DNA of 64,000 nucleotides from Dicyema japonicum (GCA_011109175.1 RDEW01000010.1:417837-481836), one strand, 5' to 3'. Numbered from the stretch's first letter, positions 42,220 to 54,010 are shown. Translations and numbers: made by a program. The notes: generated by a model not told the origin, from the sequence alone.

Positions 42220-43450
42220 CTACGAATGGAAGAAGACTATTGTATGGATCGAAGCGAAGACAGAGAGACCGAAGAATGATCCTGCTAACTACCGCCCGAT
42301 CAGCCTGATTCGGTCAATTTCAAAAATTATTGAAAAATTGTCTTCTGGAAGATTACAAATCAGCTGGAAAAAGAAGACTACTTCAGAAATGATCAAGTTG
42401 GTTTTCGCCCAGGACGGTCATGCGGTAATTGCTTGTTTCATCTCCATTCCGAGTTATGCATAGCCAAAGAATCCAAATGTCTCCTGAATGTCATATGTCT
42501 CAATATATCAAGAGCATTTGACAGTGTTAACCACAGAGTCATAATCGATCAGTAATCTCAGACGGGAGCTTAAAGGAACTAGTGAATTGGGTGAAAGTAT
42601 ACCTAGAAGGAAGAAAGTCCCATGTTAGATGCGGACGCTATTTTTCGAATATGATATTATTGAAGAGAGGAGTCCCACAAGGATCAATTTTGAGCCCTCT
42701 ATTGTTTAATGTTATAATGGCCGGTTTCCCGTCTCCGTCTACACCGAGTACGAGATCTCTGATATACGCAGACGACGTGCTACTGTCTGATATCTCGAGA
42801 TCGAGCACGATCTCAGAGAAGAGACTCAATATGTACATGGAAGAGATAAAAGACTGGTGTTGTCTTCATGGGCGAAAACTGTCAAGAAAAATCTAGTGCA
42901 ATAATGTTCCTCGGTCGGAATGGTAAAGTAAATCAGAAAGACTCCATATGCGGAATCAACATTGTGAGCTCCCTGAAGTATCTCGAAACAGCTTTTGAGA
43001 AATCTGGGAGTACATTGTGCGATTTTAAACTCAAAAGGAAGAAAGCCCCCATGCGTTATTGTGTATGAGGAAATTGAGACTTTCATTTTTTCACGTACGA
43101 TCATTCCATCACTCCTTTATGGACTGGGAAAATGGTATTACACTGCATACAAAGAGCGTTTTATCTTGCTTCTTGAAAAATCGAGGAGAGCAGGGATCAA
43201 GATTGCCTTACACAAAAGGCTCGACGAGAAGCTAGATGAAGATGAAAATTTGCTAGTAATGTCGATAAAAGATGCAGCAGAAAAAAGGATGGTAAACTAC
43301 CTGAAAAAAAGATGCCATCATTGACTCTTATGTTGCAGCACAGAATATACGCAGAAAAGAGTCCAAGCATTTGCAGGACTTGCGGCATGAGGCCAAATGA
43401 CTCCCTATTTAATTTTTCCTTGCTAATAAAGTTGTTAAAGTTAATAAGTC
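42220..43450 (+). mobile_element. LINE RT 3' fragment (Jockey/I group)
   Basis: NYRPISL, QVGFRPGRS, ISRAFDSV, GVPQGSILSPLLFN, YADD. Confidence 0.88.
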
Positions 43451-44067
43451 TATTTTGAATGGAATTATATGTTCATGAAATGAATTATCAGTTAGTTAAT
43501 AATTCCCCAATGTTCTTATCATACTCGTGTTCAATGTCCCAAAAATGGGAGATAATTGTACGGGCTTATGGGGACCTCAATCACCAACTCACTCCTTATT
43601 TCCCACTTTCCTACAAACTAGATCACCAGAGCGTCGGTATTTGGTTTGTGTTCTTGTTAGTGACATGTTCCTTTACAGGGGGTAAATATTTATCGATCCA
43701 CTCTATTGGTTAACAATATCAGCAAATACAATAATTCTTATCTGAGAAAAGTCAGCTCACATTCCATAAATACTACATTTTTTGAAATGAATTAATAGAC
43801 TCAGGGACGCTGCAACATAGAGAAGGTATATATTTATTCACTACGTCTCGCTCTCAGAGAACGATGGTTTCCCTTAAAATCCTCATCGATGTTGCAAAGA
43901 ATAAACTCAAGCATGTTGATGTAGTTAATTTACTTACCCCCAGTCACTTCAAGTGAAGGAAACAGATGGCTGACAGAAAAGTAACAGCCAAAATGGACGC
44001 TCGTAGTGATCAGTCAGATATCCGGTGTGGCGGAGAAATAGATGATGCACCTGAACAGAGAAAAGAT

Positions 44068-44486
44068 TATTATTAGCACTTTCACGAGAGCCATAATATA
44101 TGTGCAACAAAAAATATAAGAATTAGTTAGCGTGTTCCAGGATTTTCTGTTCTTAGCCAGATCTCTCAGTGTGTCCAGATCATCAGCAGATGCCAATGTT
44201 TTCTTTGTGTCTTTCAGATCGCCTGTAAACGGTTTTCTTGGTCTTCCACGAAAGCGTTTTACATGGGAATAGTAATCTTCCATGGCAATATTCGGTGAGA
44301 TGTCGGGTCCAACCTCAGGAGGTGTCCAAAGAGTCTCCTACAATAGCTTATGATCTCAAGACTTATTGGTGTACATTCACATTATTATTATTTAAGCACT
44401 TCACGAGAGCCATACTAATCATAGCATGTGCAGCAAAAGAAACAAGGTTAGATGTCATCCTTTTCCATGCTCCCCTGTTCCTAGCC
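44068..44486 (-). mobile_element. Two short RTE 3'-end fragments in tandem
   Basis: Each ends in gcactttcacgagagccata (44076, 44396) with a TAA-type tail; RFRGRPR motif. Confidence 0.8.
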
Positions 44487-45050
44487 ATATACACAGACGA
44501 CGTGCTACTGTCTGATGTGTTGAGATCGAGCATGATCTCAGAGAGGAGACTCAATGTGTATATAGAAGAGATAAAAGACTGGTGCGGTCTTCATGGGTTA
44601 AAACTGTCAGAAGAAAAATCTAGTGCAATGAGGTTCTTTGGTCGGTTTTATTATTGAGACTCAAAACGTATATGTTTTTATTTATTTTTCGATCATTCCA
44701 TCACTCCTTTATGGACTGGAAGGATGGTATTACACTGCACACAAAGAGCGTTTTATCTTGCTTCTTGAAATTGCAGGGATCAAGATTACCCTACACAAAA
44801 GGCTCGACGAGAAGCTAAATAAAGATGAAAATTTACTAGTAATGTCGATAAGAGATGCAGCTGAAAAAAAGGATGGAAAACTTTTTAAAAAGAGATGCCA
44901 TCATTGACTCGTATGTTGGAACACAGAATAAACGATAAGAGGGTCTGAGAGCTCAGATAAGAGTCCAAGCATTTGCAGCACTTGCGACATGAGGCCAACT
45001 AACTCCCTCTTTAATTTTCCTTGCTAATAAAGTTGTTAAAGTTAAAATAA
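44487..45050 (+). mobile_element. Second, internally deleted copy of the 42760-43450 LINE 3' end
   Basis: High identity to 42762-42920 and 43070-43450. Confidence 0.88.
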
Positions 45051-46705
45051 GTGACCAGTTATCCAACCAGTTTATTAGTCAGAAGGATAGAGGTGGTGAA
45101 TACCTCCATTGCACTAAATCTCTACTTAGTTTCATTATGGATAAAAGACTTGGTCTTACTTGGCGTGGAAAAGATGGCAGACCTAGTTTTGAACTAAGGA
45201 AGTTTTTCAATAAATCAGTAAAATTGCGAACAACAATGCAATGTTAATTTAAATGAGGATATTAGTGACGAGAATATATATTATTACGAGATAGCCGTTG
45301 AATTAAGGGAGCTTGGAATTAATAGGGGAGCTTAGAAGAGGATGTGTAGTAGTATACATGAAAATTGAATCAATTTATGATTTATTCGTGCTAATTAATG
45401 ATGATATTTATTTACCCCATGTCACTTCGAGTGAATAAAACCGGTAGCTAACAATAACTTCACAGCCATGAGCGGATGCTCCAGAGATCCGAAAAGTGTA
45501 TTTTGTTCAGATGTATCTGAGGCGGACCTAGGAAATAGAAGAGGTGAAGTCAAAAAGCAGGGTGGGCAAAGTGGAGAAGACGATTGTTTAATCCTGTACA
45601 GATATATATACTGGATGCCTTCGAGAGCGTATCCCGATAGCCATTGTCAGAGGAAACAGCATGTCTATTCAAGATCACTAATTAAGTGCTTTTTTAACAG
45701 TTTCATTTTTTAATAAATTATGGTAGCCTTCTAAAAAATGTTAATTATTGAATTTTTATTAAATTAAATAATAATTTTTAATTTTTTTTACTTTCCATTA
45801 ATAATTTCATTTTTTATAAAAATTCAGCCGATTTTCAGCCGATAGCACCACATGGCGCCATGTGGCGATATATCCAACATGGAATAACGACTGGAGGGGT
45901 TTCCACAACTGCAAGTAATGGACGTCTTTTACCTTTTATACTGATTTCGATGGACTCTGTTTCTGTAAAAGTGGAAACTGGATACACTTAACCCGTTGTT
46001 TACTTTTAACTTCTTTATCGGTGTCCAATTTTGGCTATTTCGCCCAGGTTGAGAACCACTTGGTTAGAGTTCTATATTTCTACTTATGAGCATATAACTA
46101 AATTCTTTTTATCAAATATTTATGGAATTTAGTTTCATATTATTTAGCTTTTTCCCTTTTCAATATTATTATAATGTTTGATTAAATATCATAATTGTGT
46201 TGGAAACTGACTACCATTAGGTAATGGGTCGTCAAGACAGTATCCTCTAATTTCACGTCGATTCCTGATGGTCGTCAAGTAAAGAGAATTTGAAGTTTTC
46301 TATCACCGAGAGATGAACCATGTCTACACCGTAGTCGTGCAACACCCACTCTGATGTTCGTGGGGGTGATTGTAATAATTAAGAAATAAATAAAATTATA
46401 ATTTTCATGATTATAACTATGAAATTAATACCCAACACGGAATAAGGGGAAGAGTTCATCTTTGTCTCCGACCAACTTGTGGAATGGGAGACAAAAAGGT
46501 ACGATTGACTTGAATGTTAAGAGAGGGGATAAGTTGCCAATCAAATCCTCTAAGAAGAGAAGGATGATTCCCATTAATTTGGATGAATAACTATTTTTTG
46601 TTTAATAAATCGACATTAAAAATAATATTTTTCTACACTTAAATAAATTAGTTTAATAAACACCCACAAAATATCTAAACCCAAAAGTGAACTAATGACC
46701 AAATA

Positions 46706-47229
46706 TTAAGAATATGCGTTGGCCGTCATGATAGCACACGCGATTGTGTTACCTTCATGACTTTCGGCTTTAAATTCGATTCTAACTTCGTGATTCTATA
46801 AATGCTCAGATATATTACCAGCTGAAAATTAGAAGTATATCTTCTGCTTAATAGAATCCTATAAGTTCTACCCGAAACTATAGTGAATTCATTGTAGATA
46901 ATCTGGATACTGCATACTTTATGCAGCCGACCAAGTCTAGTAAATAAAATATATGTTCGTGTTTCCAGAAAATGATGTAGCATTCAAATCTAATAAGGTA
47001 GCTATCACAAAATTACCTGCTTTCGAAAGTCAACATGCAAAATATACGGGCTCCCCTTCTTACGTAAATGGTTGGTCATGAGTATAATTATGTAGATATA
47101 CTCTAATAGTATTAGTTTTACCCTCTAAATATATATTTCATAATATTTAGTACCACAGTTTTGAAAGGCGATTTCACTAGACCCGATGATAAAAAATAAA
47201 ATCAAGAAAATTGTGGCATACATTTTCAT
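46706..47229 (-). pseudogene. NPC2/MD-2-related lipid-binding (ML) gene with at least 2 frame disruptions (pseudogene or assembly errors)
   Basis: Signal peptide MKMYATIFLILFFIIGSS, then IAFQNC; C-terminus IVSGRTYRI..EVRIEFKAESHEGNTIACAIM; three 23-29-nt GT-AG introns. Confidence 0.6.
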
Positions 47230-47344
47230 TTAAAATTTTATTACTTTTAAGTAAACTTTGGTTTACCATTGAAAAATTAAAAACAAATATTTAATGTAAA
47301 TTAATTTTTATATAATTTAAATTGAAATACATTTAACAAAACAT

Positions 47345-47440
47345 CTAAGGAATCGGATTTCTACGCAAACAGGAGATCCTCGTGCTGGCTATTTGAGCGA
47401 ATCTCGCAGCCATCTGGGAAGGAATAGCCACTCAGTCCGT
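47345..47440 (+). mobile_element. CRE-like 3' tip
   Basis: TGDPRA..LFERIS..WEGNSHS-like C-terminal motif, decayed. Confidence 0.5.
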
Positions 47441-48089
47441 TGTATGACTTTTTCTTTATATCATTTTAAATTAATAATAAAAAATTTAACAAAAACTGGT
47501 CATATAAAGAAAATGTTATTTTTATATATGAATACTGAGAAAACCGAATAGTTGAAGTCATACTGATTCATTTAAAAAGTAACTAGGACGTAAATTCAAT
47601 CACTTGTATTTACATAAACTCTTGAGAGTAATTTTTTTTATAAAGAGTAAAAATCAAATAGAAGTGCCTGATAAATAGTTTATCTCTATTTTCAATCAAC
47701 TTTTGGAATCGAGGTTATTATTGCAAAAACATCCCATTGAGTGTGAGAAGAGGAGAAATGAATGTAGAAAAAGGGTACAAGTTGGTTCTACTATGAAGAG
47801 AAGGGTGATTTTAGTGATTTGAGTGAATGACTGCTATAATACTCCAACCTCGTTACCTTGTAATAGTTCAGCTATCCTCAGTCGTCCAGTGCTGGACACT
47901 TCTACAAGTCTTCGATGTTCACCGGAAATCCGGGCATGAGAAAGTTTCTCATTTTAACAAAGATTTTAAATTTTAATAAAACAGTAAATTATAATGAAAT
48001 ATTTATTCCAAATATTTTCTATACACATTTAAATCAATTAGTTGAATAAACTCACAAAAATTAATAAATTAAATATTGTTTCCTGATTT

Positions 48090-48350
48090 TCAACATGGCT
48101 TCAGATCAGGCCAACGACGCATTTGGGTCTGTCTCCCAGTTCATCACAGACGGCTTCACCACGAAGACGCACTTATGGACGGCTCTGGTGTCAATAGATT
48201 TACAGAAAGCCTTCGACTCGGTTTCGAGGACTCTCCTAACAAAGTAAATCTTTAACTCAAATTTACATCGAGCATCATGCTATGCCTGAAAATTTCTTAA
48301 ATGGCCGATGTGGAAGAGTCCGGATTGGAAAAATTACTTCGAAATCAAAT
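48090..48350 (+). mobile_element. LINE RT fragment
   Basis: FQHGFR..TALVSIDLQKAFDSV. Confidence 0.8.
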
Positions 48351-48425
48351 TATTAATTATGATTTATTAACCTCGGGAATCAAATCCAGGACAAATTTAT
48401 AAGTACGACACTTTACCTGCTGAAC

Positions 48426-50240
48426 TAGTGGTTCCCAACCTTTTTGAGAGCACGGAACCCTATCGACATTTTTCATTTTATACAGAACCCTCATATATTT
48501 TTTAACAATTATCAATATTTTACTAATATAAAAAATACAATGATAGTGAGATGGTTGAGGCTGCTGTCTCTTGCATAGCTCTGTAATATTTGACAGGGAT
48601 AAACGCAGGTCCTCTTCCACATACAGTAGGTTAGCCCGTTTTTTATGCTTTATATTTGTTAATGCAGAAAATCCACTTTCACAGAGATAAGTCGTTGAAA
48701 ACGATCATAACTCTTAAATTTTTGTTTGCTAGAATAGAATATTCTTTTTTTACAATCAGCAAAAACTAATCAATATCAATGTTCCATTTTTAACGTTCTG
48801 TCACTTGAAACAAACGGATGTTCTTCCTCTTTTACTGATAGCTCGTTTCCAGTAGTTTTGTACTCAGCAAAAAGATTCCTCACCCAATCATAGAGTTCAA
48901 CTGATATGGGTGGAAAATAATTATTCGTACATGTAAATAGTGACTCCAAGTGGTCTACAATTTGTGGAACAATATCTTTAAAATTTCATTCTTGCATTTC
49001 CAAGTTTCCATTCGTGATATGTCGTTTCCATATTTGTAGTTTTTTTTTAAAAAAAACAGCTATTTTTTCCGCGCAACTCAATAGATTTTCATTTCTTCCC
49101 TACATGTTGTTATTGAGAACATTGAGTTCGTGAAAAATATCGGCGAGGTATGCTAATTTGCAACACCAACATTCATCATTAAGGCATTCTATGAAGTCAT
49201 CCAACTTCTCTTGTATACACAAGCAAACAATTCGTGTCTTAGTTCATAGAAACGAATTAACATGTTTCCCTTTGAGAGCCATCTTACTTCAGTATGCAAA
49301 ATCAAAACTGAATGTTCTGCATTTTCACAAAGTTTCGAAACTGTCGCAATTTCAACGGCCTTATTTTGGCGTAATTAATTATTTCGCAACAGAAACAAAG
49401 CCTTTAAATTGCCCAGTCATTGCTGGAGCACCATCAGTGCAGATACCCACACATGTATTCCAATCCAACTTTATATCCTCAAAATATGAATTTATAAGAT
49501 TGAAAATGTCATATCCCTTTGTTGTTCCTAGCAACTCTTTACAGCAAAGAAAATCTTCAAAAATGTATTCATCGTGTATATATCTAACGAAAACAAGTTG
49601 CATTCTTCCTGTCATTAATCCACTTGAAGCGTAGAAAACACAGATTTTTTTATTCGCCGAACCAAAGTGGTTTAATGTCATCAGACATATCCTTGATGCG
49701 TCTGCTCACAGAATTATTAGAAGTAGGAATTAAGTCGAGCTCTGCGGTAGCAATTTCTTCAAACATTATCTTAACTACTTCTTTGCATTCAGGCAAAATA
49801 ACAGTTTCGACAAGAGTATGCGATTACATTTTTATCGGTAATCTCATCAACAGCATAACCAGGATGCAGTGCTTTTTCGTTTATTTTGATTTTTTTGTAA
49901 AACGGGATGCTTGAACTTTATTCTGGTCCAATTTCCGCATAAAATATTTTTTTTCTTTGAAAGTTCTGGGTGCTTGGTTGAGAAATGACGTCTAAGTATC
50001 GTTGGAGTCATATTACAATTCACAAGTTTTTCACCGAAGACAACACAAAGTGGTAGAGGGCAATCCATGTCCCCAGTCCATGTGAAACCAAAAGCAATAT
50101 AACTTTCTCGATGAGATCGAACTTGAAGATATGCACTGCACAAGAATCCGTTTAGACACGCGCAAATTAAATTAATTCGTTTTGAAAAAAGAATAGAAAA
50201 AAAATTTGGAACTTTGCGAGACCCAGGTTGGGAACCTCTG
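48426..50240 (-). mobile_element. hAT Buster/Charlie (ZBED5/SCAND3-like) transposon, degraded transposase
   Basis: TIRs (T)AGTGGTTCCCAACC / GGTTGGGAACCTCTG; TSD tgctgaac/tgctaaac; YIAFGFTW..PLC..LRRH (BED finger), EDFLCC, CTDGAPAM, STTYLCESGFS. Confidence 0.92.
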
Positions 50241-50330
50241 TGCTAAACTATTTAATAAATATTTTAAATTTACTTTTATAAATAATTTTTAAATTAAATT
50301 GAATAAATATTGCTTGCCCAATTCAAAGTA

Positions 50331-52327
50331 ATGTCAATTTTGACAAATAACTATTACCCACACAGCGGTCATTCAAAAAACACAATTAACTACGAAAGTA
50401 AAACCCAATTTATTACAAGAAGAAATTAAGTTCCCACTGACAATAAAAAGTTACTGCATACCTTCAAACGGCTTAATCAACGGAGTTCACAGACAAATCA
50501 TAAACGATAATAAGATGCACGTGGAAAAACGAAATATTTGCGAATTTCTCCAAGTCGTTTGTACAAAAAGCTTCAAATTTGAGTTACTTGGATGCAACAA
50601 AAACTGGGGTTTATTCTTCAAAGGTTCTTTTTTCTTACCATTTGGGAATAAACAAGTTCGTGCAACTAACAGGCAACGACAAACTCGAAATTTCAAATAT
50701 CACAGAAAAATTTAAAGTAATATTTAAAATTAAATATAGTTTGAATTTATACAATATTATAATAATATGTGTTTATTCAACGATTTGATATTTTTCATAT
50801 TCTCGCAATTTATCGGTAGTCTTATAAGAGTAAGTAACTCTTTCATGCAATTTAGGGATACTTTTACGCCACAAAAATCTCAAATAAAAGTAACCACGTG
50901 GAGTTCTACAGAAAAGACATGTGGTTTGAAATGGTCGCGAATAATCTTGTCGAATTGACAGAAAGTGGTTTTATTGAGCGGATAAATGCAGTTTTTGATT
51001 TATTTTTAATTAGGAAAATGACTTTGATGCTATAAAACTTCGTTTTGTCCCCAAGTCTGATTCTCTGAGACCAATCTTCAATTTAGGAAACCGACGAGAT
51101 CCTCTCTCTGCCAATAAACTGCTGGAGCCGCTTTTTTTGCTTCTAAATAAGATCAAAGTATTTTTTACAAAAATTTAGGTGGGAAATATTGCTGATTCGG
51201 TGGGAACTCTGTTCAATAGATTTGTCAAATTTAAGCTAGAAAATGAGGAGTGGTCTCGTTTTTATGTCGTGAAATGCGATTTAGTCTCCTTTTTCAACTG
51301 GATTGATAGAAGTCGCTTGCTGAAGATCTTCGACTCGGAGATCTCTTCTTTTTGTGCCTTTCAGGGAATTTCAGATTCCTTTGAAAGACATAAAACGAGC
51401 CTCAGGAACCTCTTTGATTCTCCCGTGTCGGTATTTTTGCTTTGATCTAAGTTGTAGATTTATAACATGATGTTTAAAACCAAACGAGGAGTCCTTCAGG
51501 GGTCCATCGTGGCCAAACAGCTTGGAGACCTTTATCTAAGAGATCTCGAGTCTAACCTTAACCTTGTTGGCTGTTCTGATAAACTTTTGCTGAGACATGT
51601 GGATGATACTTTGTTTATCATTACAAATTACGGAAACGCGTTGGAATTTGTCACGGAATACACAAAATGTCGTGTTTTTCTCACATTTCAGTGCTAAGTC
51701 AGTATAATCTCCATTTGAATGGGATTAAATTGTGCGCAAACTTCATGATCCCAGAGATCAGCTTTTCAGGTACTGCCGTGTCTGGCAATTTAGAATCAAT
51801 TCCCTGGTTTTGGCATATTCTGGCTACAAAAAGTCTCGAGTTCGCCTTGGATATCCCCCATAGAATGGAGAAGAAGAATATTACTCATAATGAGGGGAAC
51901 ACTTGGATTCAAACCATCAGGAGGATAATGCAGCCGTTTACGGGATCTTCCGTTATGTCATATCTCATGGATTCGCGGGTATTCTTTCTAAGTTCTTCAG
52001 ATTACTAAGTTCCCTACTTTGGTCTCCAATTTGTATGAATTGGGGGTTGTTGTGTGTGCTAAGCTGTTTTATGGACTTTTAAGGAGAGCTAATAAGCGGG
52101 AAATTTACTTCAAATTGGACTGTAAGACCAAGAGTGACTTTTAGGGATCATTTTGACGTTGTCTAGTCGGCTCTATAGGGCGGTGAATGTAAATGATGGT
52201 TTATGAGTTAGAAAGTGAATACAATCGTGTGGGAGGGAATCGTTGAATGGTTGTAACTCGGGGTAATTATAGGATTGTTGGGGAGGCGATGAGATATGTG
52301 CTGAGGCTTAAAGATGAGGGGACATAG
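50331..52327 (+). CDS. TERT: Telomerase reverse transcriptase, minimal form (~570 aa, 12 introns of 21-29 nt)
   Basis: CP (IKSYCIP), QFP (ICEFLQ..ELLGCNKNW..INKFVQL), T motif (LIRGYFYATK..VEFYRKDMW), motifs 1/2 (LRFVPKSDSLRPIFN), A (YVVKCD), B' (GVLQGS), C (LLRHVDD), D (YNLHLNGIK), E (IPWFW) and CTE, all in order. 1997 nt minus 284 intron nt = 571 codons. Confidence 0.93.
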
Positions 52328-52539
52328 GAAACTCATTTGAAAGGCAGGGAGGATATGTAGGCGAAAGCAGTGTCAGTCGAATGTGGAGATGGATGCCTGT
52401 GGAGATTATCATGCTATAATTGGTAGATCTAAGTTTTGTGAATTGTGAATTTTTCTTTCTTTTTTATTTTTTTATTTTATGATTTACCGATCAGTTGGTC
52501 GTGGTTCTTTTGGTGAATTTATGAGGCCTTATTATTAGT

Positions 52540-54010
52540 AAGCTGATACTGAACACCGAAGAACAAACTGAAGCCATCGCGGCTTACTTTGAGAAGCTTT
52601 TCAGCATCAAAACCATAGAAATCCACCCACTTGATGGAAGGCCAAGACCCCTTGAAATACAAATCACGGCCGAGGAAATCAAAACGACCTGCCGAAAACT
52701 CGAGAATAACAAAAGCCCCGGACCAGATGCGATAAACCCAGAATTACTGAAATGCGGCACCCTTTTTGAAAAAATCGCTACACTACTAAATGAAATGTTT
52801 TCAACTAACTCAGCTCTACCTCTGGGTACGGGACTACTAATCCCCATACAAAAAATCAACAAAACCAGAGGACCGCTCAAAAATTTGCGACCCATCATAC
52901 TACTAAATTCATTACGCAAAGTCTTGGCAAACATTGTGCTTGAACGAATAAAAGGATCTGCTTACAAATACCTACCAGATAGTCAAAGTGGTTTTCAAGA
53001 AGGGAGATCCACAGCCGATGCGGTCTGGAGTCACAGATGGAGGTGTGCAACATATCAAAGATACCGTAACGCCACCAATATTCTGAGAATTGACCTATCA
53101 AGAGCATTTGATACGGTTAACAGTAACAAATTAATGGGGGTACTGAGCGGATTTCTTGCTAAGGATGACCCGAATTTTACTTTTCAACACTGAGCTCTTT
53201 GTGAGAGTCGGAAAGACCTATTCAAGAAAATTTGAAACAAACACGGTCACTCCACAAGGAGACTCTTTCTCCTCTACTATTCACAATTTATTTGGAAGCC
53301 GCTATGAGGGAACTTAGACCTTTATACCAAGGAAAGACGGAAGAAGTGATCTACGCGGACGATGCAGACCTAATTTCTGAAGACAAAGAGGTCCTGGAAA
53401 ACCTATTAGAAAAAGCAGCAGATGTACTATGGAAATGGTTTTTTACTGTGAACAGAGAGAAAACAAAACTCACAGAGATAAGAAGGATGAGTATCCTAGA
53501 AGAGAAGTGACGACAAGTAAAGAAACTCGGTTCACTTATGGGAGATAGCGAAGATATTTTATTTAGGAAAACTCTAGCCAATGCTGCGTTATATAAACTG
53601 AAGAATCTATGGCTCAATCAAAGAGGTATCGACACGAAAATGAGAATCCTATTATACGACTCATTCATAAAACCCGAACTTTTATATAACGCTGGAACTC
53701 GGGCGACCTCATCAGCGGATATGGAAAAACTAGACTCGTTCCACAGAGGTCAGCTGAGAAAAATAACAGGAACTACTTGGCCAACGAGAATATCGAGAAT
53801 ATAAGAGATGCAGCACTAGACCTATCAGCTTAGAAGTACTGGAATCCCGATGGAAGTTCTTCGGACACGTGCTGAGGATGGAATTAACATCCCCATTATC
53901 TATGGAAACATACTATGTTAGTCAAGAAAACCGCTATCGTGGAAGACCTAGAACAACACTGCCAAAAGTCTTACAAAAAGACCTGGTCAACATCAAAAGA
54001 AATCTAAATA
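52540..54010 (+). mobile_element. 5'-truncated degraded RTE LINE
   Basis: Close relative of 17862-20810 (LRPIILLNSLRKVLA, WSHRWRCAT, YADD, RGRPR). Confidence 0.92.

Follow-up and report, generated by a model that had tools for sequence, protein, structure and literature searches.

A putative telomerase reverse transcriptase without TEN and TRAP in the dicyemid Dicyema japonicum

Telomerase reverse transcriptases (TERTs) with neither a TEN domain nor a TRAP segment are described in insects, and a locus in Dicyema japonicum appears to be built like them. The Dicyema locus is found in a stretch of 64,000 nucleotides (nt) of the genome (GCA_011109175.1 RDEW01000010.1:417837-481836), referred to here as the window, from position 50331 on the + strand. 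The Tribolium castaneum TERT begins with the RNA-binding domain, has no TEN domain and shows an interval between motifs A and B′ that is too short for the TRAP segment. Spodoptera frugiperda TERT, which lacks both TEN and TRAP and shares this miniature build with the Dicyema protein, has been shown to be a bona fide telomerase: reconstituted in cells, it forms a processive enzyme with a degenerate RNA of very small size (PMC11892584). The TEN domain is stated to be absent from many nematode and arthropod TERTs; the short TERTs of nematodes, among them Caenorhabditis elegans TRT-1, are small proteins with a reduced N-terminus and are described as TEN-less (PMC11892584). A survey of metazoan TERTs reports that nematodes retain a GQ motif and that protostomes at large, molluscs and planarians among them, have lost the canonical GQ (TEN) motif (PMC5405514).

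The Dicyema locus most probably (a probability of about 0.8) represents a functional single-copy TERT that is built like the Tribolium and Spodoptera enzymes, has a short thumb and lacks TEN. To judge from its sequence it is a genuine, intact-looking TERT gene and a member of the TEN-less, TRAP-less class known from insects. Telomeres and telomerase go unmentioned in the dicyemid genome paper (PMC6736024) and the metazoan survey includes no dicyemids (PMC5405514); the present account is the first TERT description found for this phylum.

The gene model was built from a three-frame translation of window positions 50200–52500. Conserved motifs are scattered over the three + frames and lie between short AT-rich segments bounded by GT..AG. 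When these segments are removed the model extends from 50331 to 52327 (+) and consists of 13 exons, 1695 nt and 564 codons with no internal stops, close to the approximately 570 amino acids (aa) estimated in an earlier note on this DNA. The parts are as follows.

50331–50397, + strand: exon 1, 22 codons plus 1 nt beginning with the ATG; a 22-nt GT..AG intron joins it to the exon 2 frame.
50420–50623, + strand: exon 2, segments of the RNA-binding domain that by eye resemble human CP (SYCIP) and QFP (FELLGCNKNWGLFFK).
50624–50672, + strand: intron 2, 49 nt, the sole intron longer than 27 nt; placed by frame logic.
50673–50716, + strand: exon 3, GNDKLEISNITEKFK; placed by frame logic.
50740–50829, + strand: exon 4, helix preceding the T motif; flanked by GT..AG introns of 23 nt and 26 nt.
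50856–50990, + strand: exon 5, T motif FYATK...FYRKDMW; Pfam PF12009 match.
51014–51157, + strand: exon 6, reverse transcriptase (RT) motifs 1 and 2, LRFVPKSDSLRPIFNL; alignment with human TERT.
51179–51430, + strand: exon 7, motif A VVKCD with Asp262 at 51278, and a short IFD.
51458–51668, + strand: exon 8, motif B′ KRGVLQGS (Gln326) and motif C HVDD (Asp361/362 at 51602/51605).
51692–51978, + strand: exon 9, motif D NGIK, motif E IPWFW and the beginning of the C-terminal extension.
52001–52121, + strand: exon 10, C-terminal extension (thumb); placed by frame logic.
52145–52188, 52212–52252 and 52273–52327, + strand: exons 11–13, tentative C-terminus with two small introns.

The introns, all GT..AG, measure 22, 49, 23, 26, 23, 21, 27, 23, 22, 23, 23 and 20 nt in order; 11 of the 12 are thus 20–27 nt long. 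The D. japonicum genome is reported as 67.5 Mb in 377 scaffolds with 36.7% GC, 49% repeats, 1.24% heterozygosity and a mean intron of 38 bp (PMC6736024), and the assembly searched here has 67,542,437 bases in 377 pieces. Dicyemid introns have a median of 27 bp and about two thirds are under 30 bp (PMC6543705), with which the TERT intron sizes agree.

The exon 1 ATG is the first one after an in-frame stop at 50304–50306, which lies 24 nt upstream. The exon 2 frame is free of stops from 50344 to 50712, in DNA of 31% GC. Only the acceptor at 50672 leads into the exon 3 frame, giving an intron of 49 nt from donor 50624 or 64 nt from donor 50609. An alternative intron of 33 nt (50624–50656) preserves the frame and then meets a stop. 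The 49-nt intron takes out the stretch INKFVQLT, which is similar to human KKFISL; if that stretch is coding instead, a +1 frameshift follows in both haplotypes. At the other end of the gene, the exon 10 frame hits a stop at 52142–52144 if the following intron is left unspliced, and enumeration of the 3′ exon paths from 52121 on gives more than 40,000 open GT..AG paths. The C-terminus is therefore tentative and is not fixable from the sequence; the end at 52448 given in the earlier note is equally open and would add approximately 25 residues. The stop at 52325–52327 (TAG) was chosen with the intervening pieces likened by eye to helices of the human C-terminal extension. As modelled, approximately 145 aa follow motif E. 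This tentative extension is approximately 50 aa shorter than that of the 596-aa Tribolium TERT (PDB 3DU6/3KYL).

RT motifs 1, 2, A, B′, C, D and E are all found in order together with the Asp triad. At the N-terminal side, CP-like SYCIP occupies codons 33–37, where the earlier note had placed a CP motif about 30 codons after the first ATG, and QFP-like FELLGCNKNW starts at codon 76. The T motif spans residues 138–158 (FYATK at 138, FYRKDMW at 152). Motifs 1 and 2 are found at 189–204, with LRFVPK at 189 and LRPIFNL at 198, the motif-2 Arg being Arg199. The codon of motif A Asp262 is at 51278, that of B′ Gln326 at 51497 and those of motif C Asp361 and Asp362 at 51602 and 51605, so that the three catalytic Asp codons are those first read from the DNA. 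Motif D, NGIK at 392, supplies Asn392 and Lys395, and motif E is IPWFW at 419.

All database searches were run exon by exon, and the joined protein was used solely for length, landmark and codon-change counts. Exon 5 matches Pfam PF12009 (Telomerase_RBD) with an E-value of 8.6e-4 and 19.9 bits over profile positions 101–130. With no more than some 30 profile positions falling in exon 5, this score stays under the 25-bit cut-off. In the Pfam scan of each exon the T-motif exon alone scored and no match attained its cut-off; exons 2 and 9 gave no Pfam matches. Exon 6 aligns with human TERT 620–636, RLRFIPKPDGLRPIVNM. A search of the PDB with exon 8 (B′/C) shows TERTs as the best eight matches (Tetrahymena 763–838, fungal, human 829–884). 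No TERT-like match was found in the PDB sequence search with exons 2, 7 and 9, the one exon 7 match being a retron reverse transcriptase over motif A. The exon 9 pattern was likened by eye to human NLRKTVVNF...FPWCGLL, and a Pfam search of the whole genome with PF21399 (TERT_C) gave no candidates. The identification as TERT thus rests on the collinear order T-1-2-A-B′-C-D-E and an exact 35-residue B′–C spacing, not on single scores.

The retron match over motif A speaks for another reading, in which the locus is not TERT but a reverse transcriptase domesticated from a retroelement, Penelope-like or of another type. Exon 8 in addition matches many repeated copies in the genome at E ~1. Its matches elsewhere in the genome are weak (E 0.1–2) and belong mostly to this one multi-copy family, which presumably consists of LINE reverse transcriptases. 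A retroelement origin is nevertheless very unlikely. The exon 5 T motif matches Telomerase_RBD, exons 6 and 8 have only TERTs as their best matches, and B′ and C lie exactly 35 aa apart, the spacing seen in Tribolium and human TERT. The locus shows no endonuclease domain. Telomerase_RBD and the T-motif exon each match one locus genome-wide, the TERT locus, and no second full-length TERT, which the earlier note had considered, was found in the genome. Dicyema TERT is a single-copy host gene with 12 spliceosomal introns and not a retroelement.

Exon 8 was also compared with 1.84 billion proteins. Four significant matches were found, all TERT-fragment-like by their B′/C motifs and none of them from a close relative. 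One of them is on a contig adjoining genes with TEN_TERT and Telomerase_RBD matches. The best match (48% identity, on a 944-bp contig) was considered as a dicyemid-type gene and rejected, as neighbouring exons resembling those of Dicyema are absent. Another is a 377-aa TERT fragment in GCA_000803305.1 (JPKZ01003183.1), presumably the Toxocara canis genome. Its A–B′ interval is approximately 135 aa, and nematode TERTs thus appear not to be uniformly TRAP-less. The B′-C-D segment of this fragment is present twice in nearly identical form, which may reflect either duplication of exons in tandem or an artefact of the assembly or gene model.

The Tribolium TERT landmarks R194, D251, Q308, D343, N369 and K372 (PMC7274783, which also gives the human motif-2 Arg as R631) correspond to R199, D262, Q326, D361, N392 and K395 in Dicyema. 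The B′–C spacing is the same, 35 aa, in Dicyema, Tribolium and human TERT. The distance from motif C to the motif D Lys is 28 aa in Tribolium and 33 in Dicyema, with the catalytic triad and the motif D Lys kept in both. The steric-gate residue, Tyr256 in Tribolium (PMC7274783), is Phe267 in Dicyema. The two also differ in lineage, one being an insect and the other a spiralian, and the Dicyema gene has 12 tiny introns. Motif E, YCG in Tribolium, is WFW in Dicyema, and at the B′ position where Dicyema has Leu for Pro, Tribolium has Leu too. Human and Tetrahymena TERTs share the T motif, motifs 1 to E and the catalytic residues with Dicyema, but there TEN and TRAP are present.

The interval from the motif A Asp to the B′ Gln is 64 aa in the Dicyema model, compared with 57 in Tribolium, 121 in human and approximately 155 in Tetrahymena TERT. 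The human and Tetrahymena B′ positions are from the exon 8 PDB alignments, and the motif A Asp was taken to be D712 in human and D618 in Tetrahymena. The earlier note gave the same 64 aa, with approximately 120 for human, and read the protein as lacking both TEN and IFD/TRAP. The second part of that reading is amended here. Tribolium TERT keeps IFD helices alpha13 and alpha14, a pair whose conservation is said to extend to every TERT (PMC8740718). Since a 64-aa interval fits two helices but not the TRAP hairpin, TRAP is absent and a short IFD remains. Dicyema TERT, by the length of this interval, appears to be without TRAP but with a short, Tribolium-like IFD of two-helix size.

The N-terminal end of the protein gives the strongest argument for the absence of TEN. 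There are 198 residues before the motif-2 Arg in Dicyema, 193 in Tribolium and 630 in human TERT. Because this spacing nearly equals that of Tribolium, the N-terminus appears to lack nothing that a TERT beginning with its RNA-binding domain would have, and the Dicyema TERT as modelled begins there, without TEN. The DNA upstream of the gene consists of the following features, and the earlier observation that they hold no TEN-like exons is borne out.

50241–50330, + strand: AT-rich 5′ flank of 90 bp, from the hAT end to the ATG.
48426–50240, − strand: hAT-type transposon remnant, high copy; recognized by terminal inverted repeats (TIRs), target duplication and read depth.
47936–48425, + strand: LINE-like repeat fragment; read depth approximately 10-fold, RT-like open reading frame (ORF) pieces.

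The flank (50241–50330) contains no ORF. The hAT remnant and the LINE fragment together occupy 2.4 kb directly upstream of the gene, and inspection of window positions 45000–48100 beyond showed no TEN-like exons. Searches of the whole genome, as the earlier note had suggested, with the Pfam TEN_TERT hidden Markov model (HMM) gave no candidate, a weak blank as the model scored nowhere, and a TEN-bearing ORF of an unrelated eukaryote gave no matches to the genome. The same exon-wise search that found no TEN did find POT1 above its cut-off. Given the GQ loss reported for protostomes in general (PMC5405514), the loss of TEN at least may predate dicyemids.

Several points weigh against a functional, complete, TEN-less TERT. 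The exon-level database scores are each weak (E 0.001–0.1). TEN is poorly conserved and might be overlooked by an HMM search done exon by exon. All four public runs covering the locus are genomic, with contigs collinear through the introns (for example 50786–51552, gapless), and consequently the model's 5′ end, its 49-nt intron and its last three exons are predictions. An AG at 50327–50328 is a possible acceptor for an upstream exon. The assembly contains no telomeric arrays, and short-period arrays are absent from 40 ends of large scaffolds, so that telomeres of the telomerase type are a presumption. Finally, the assembled haplotype has Lys142 (K142) for the T-motif Glu and Asn268 (N268) for the Asp of the motif A 'YD', and its motif E reads WFW instead of WCG.

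The acceptor, the genomic nature of the runs and the difficulty of detecting TEN by sequence, with a Pfam model that scores nowhere, would all suit a longer gene, in which TEN exons upstream of the hAT/LINE insertions, or further away, are joined by splicing, across a distance above 2.4 kb, to an acceptor around 50328 or 50363. This seems improbable. The length to the motif-2 Arg already matches a TERT without TEN, and TRAP, the partner of TEN, is also missing from the A–B′ interval. Introns in the genome are 27–38 bp, and an in-frame stop is present just before the ATG. The single-copy stretch at 47200–47935 carries eight indel polymorphisms of 1–2 nt and no long open frames; with these indels it was judged to be non-coding.

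The changed residues bear on another possibility, that the locus is a decaying or non-catalytic relic with an atypically long intron or a frameshift at approximately 50624–50656. The loss of INKFVQLT to the 49-nt intron, or the frameshift if it is coding, suits a relic, as do K142, N268 and WFW, Pfam scores that never reach a cut-off and the finding that no RNA run is among the public runs covering the locus. We consider decay unlikely, by a hair less so than the longer gene. Among the differences listed between read contigs and assembly in the TERT model, 9 are synonymous and 8 nonsynonymous; with 349 synonymous and 1343 nonsynonymous sites this gives pN/pS ~0.23 and a binomial P = 0.003. No indels in the gene are listed among these differences, the contigs over the gene are gapless and there are no stops over 13 exons. 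The synonymous excess and the lack of indels therefore point to purifying selection in the modelled frames. The catalytic Asp, Gln, Lys and Arg are all kept, and a 49-nt intron is inside the range of a genome with a mean of 38 bp. Read contigs with G at 50874 change Lys142 to Glu and restore FYxTE, and those with G at 51296 change Asn268 to Asp, restoring the Asp that follows the steric-gate position. Phe267 at the steric-gate Tyr site, the B′ Leu for Pro and the motif E WFW are unusual in assembly and reads alike.

Over window positions 47200–52700 the four genomic runs all have contigs that depart from the assembly at approximately 1% of sites. Two of these sites, 50874 and 51296, give Lys142 and Asn268 to the assembled haplotype only. 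The differences have a strong direction: in run X1 there are 17 changes A to G and 14 T to C from assembly to reads, compared with 3 G to A and 5 C to T. Such an A/T bias in the assembly is what rare derived alleles in the assembled haplotype would produce, with the contigs representing the majority allele.

A POT1-type OB-fold gene is found elsewhere in the genome (G000:C212:608784-609233; Pfam PF02765, 40.9 bits, above cut-off). It carries one in-frame TAG, which is probably in an intron. A protein that binds telomeric single strands is thus kept in this genome. Of the partners the earlier note had named, POT1 is accordingly present, while the Pfam search of the genome for TPP1 and the Rfam RF00024 search for a vertebrate-type telomerase RNA detected none, which says little. 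Together with purifying selection on the gene, POT1 gives catalytic activity only indirect support. The predicted TERT would pair with a telomerase RNA, probably small or divergent, and would extend POT1-bound ends by telomeric repeats, the probable unit being TTAGGG. Recruitment and any processivity would rest on something other than the TEN-TRAP-TPP1 interface. The repeat in insects is TTAGG, whereas in Dicyema only short interstitial TTAGGG tracts are seen. The sequence (TTAGGG)3 occurs at 5 loci, one of them a seven-copy tract in C202, with 0 for the reversed control, and (TTAGGG)5 has one genomic occurrence, which is an interstitial six-copy tract.

The spiralian lineage Dicyemida may in this way join the animals whose telomerase lacks TEN and TRAP. 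That the loss was independent in dicyemids, as the earlier note had proposed, is plausible for a spiralian. The stronger combination, in which TEN and TRAP were lost together independently of insects and nematodes, the RNA is very small and degenerate and telomeres are added de novo at breaks, is unlikely, if slightly less so than decay of the gene. Chromosome healing is motivated by the chromatin elimination reported in dicyemid somatic cells (PMC6543705). The suggestions of non-processivity, chromosome healing and an unusual telomerase RNA are speculation. The Dicyema case would support a joint loss of TEN and TRAP, with the bare TERT ring kept under selection, and its 564 codons offer a compact start for finding the dicyemid telomerase RNA. 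It also makes it possible to ask how an animal with approximately 30 somatic cells and programmed chromatin elimination deals with its chromosome ends. The understanding of telomerase mechanism is unchanged by it.

The hAT remnant displays a TIR pair of 15 nt, TAGTGGTTCCCAACCT / AGGTTGGGAACCTCTG, which is 93% complementary, and an 8-bp target duplication, TGCTGAAC / TGCTAAAC, with 7 of 8 bases identical. Its read depth is 20–150x that of the TERT gene. Transposase-like ORF pieces are present on the minus strand and show no Pfam matches. The LINE-like fragment at 47936–48425 contains ORF pieces such as QHGFRSG and IDLQKAFDSV, also with no Pfam matches. On the 3′ side of TERT a T-rich low-complexity stretch (52449–52490) is found, and a high-copy LINE begins at approximately 52538 and extends to 53510, with RVT_1 matches at 52795–53190 and 53232–53507 on the + strand. 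With hAT and LINE sequences upstream and a LINE downstream, TERT is enclosed by transposons on both sides. Two similar 5′-truncated LINE RT fragments are found in tandem on the + strand at window positions 42582–44907; their ORFs share YADDVLLSD...KDWC...HG.KLS and PSLLYGL..WYYTA.KERFILLLE.

The (TTAGGG)6 tract at G000:C313:7790-8090 is situated between inverted-repeat arms, gcccgtcattgttacttg / caagtaacaatgacgggc, approximately 190 bp apart, and may represent either a repeat element or an end that was healed or fused. A 6.1-kb scaffold (G000:C202) also carries an interstitial tract, of approximately seven CCCTAA copies including one variant unit.

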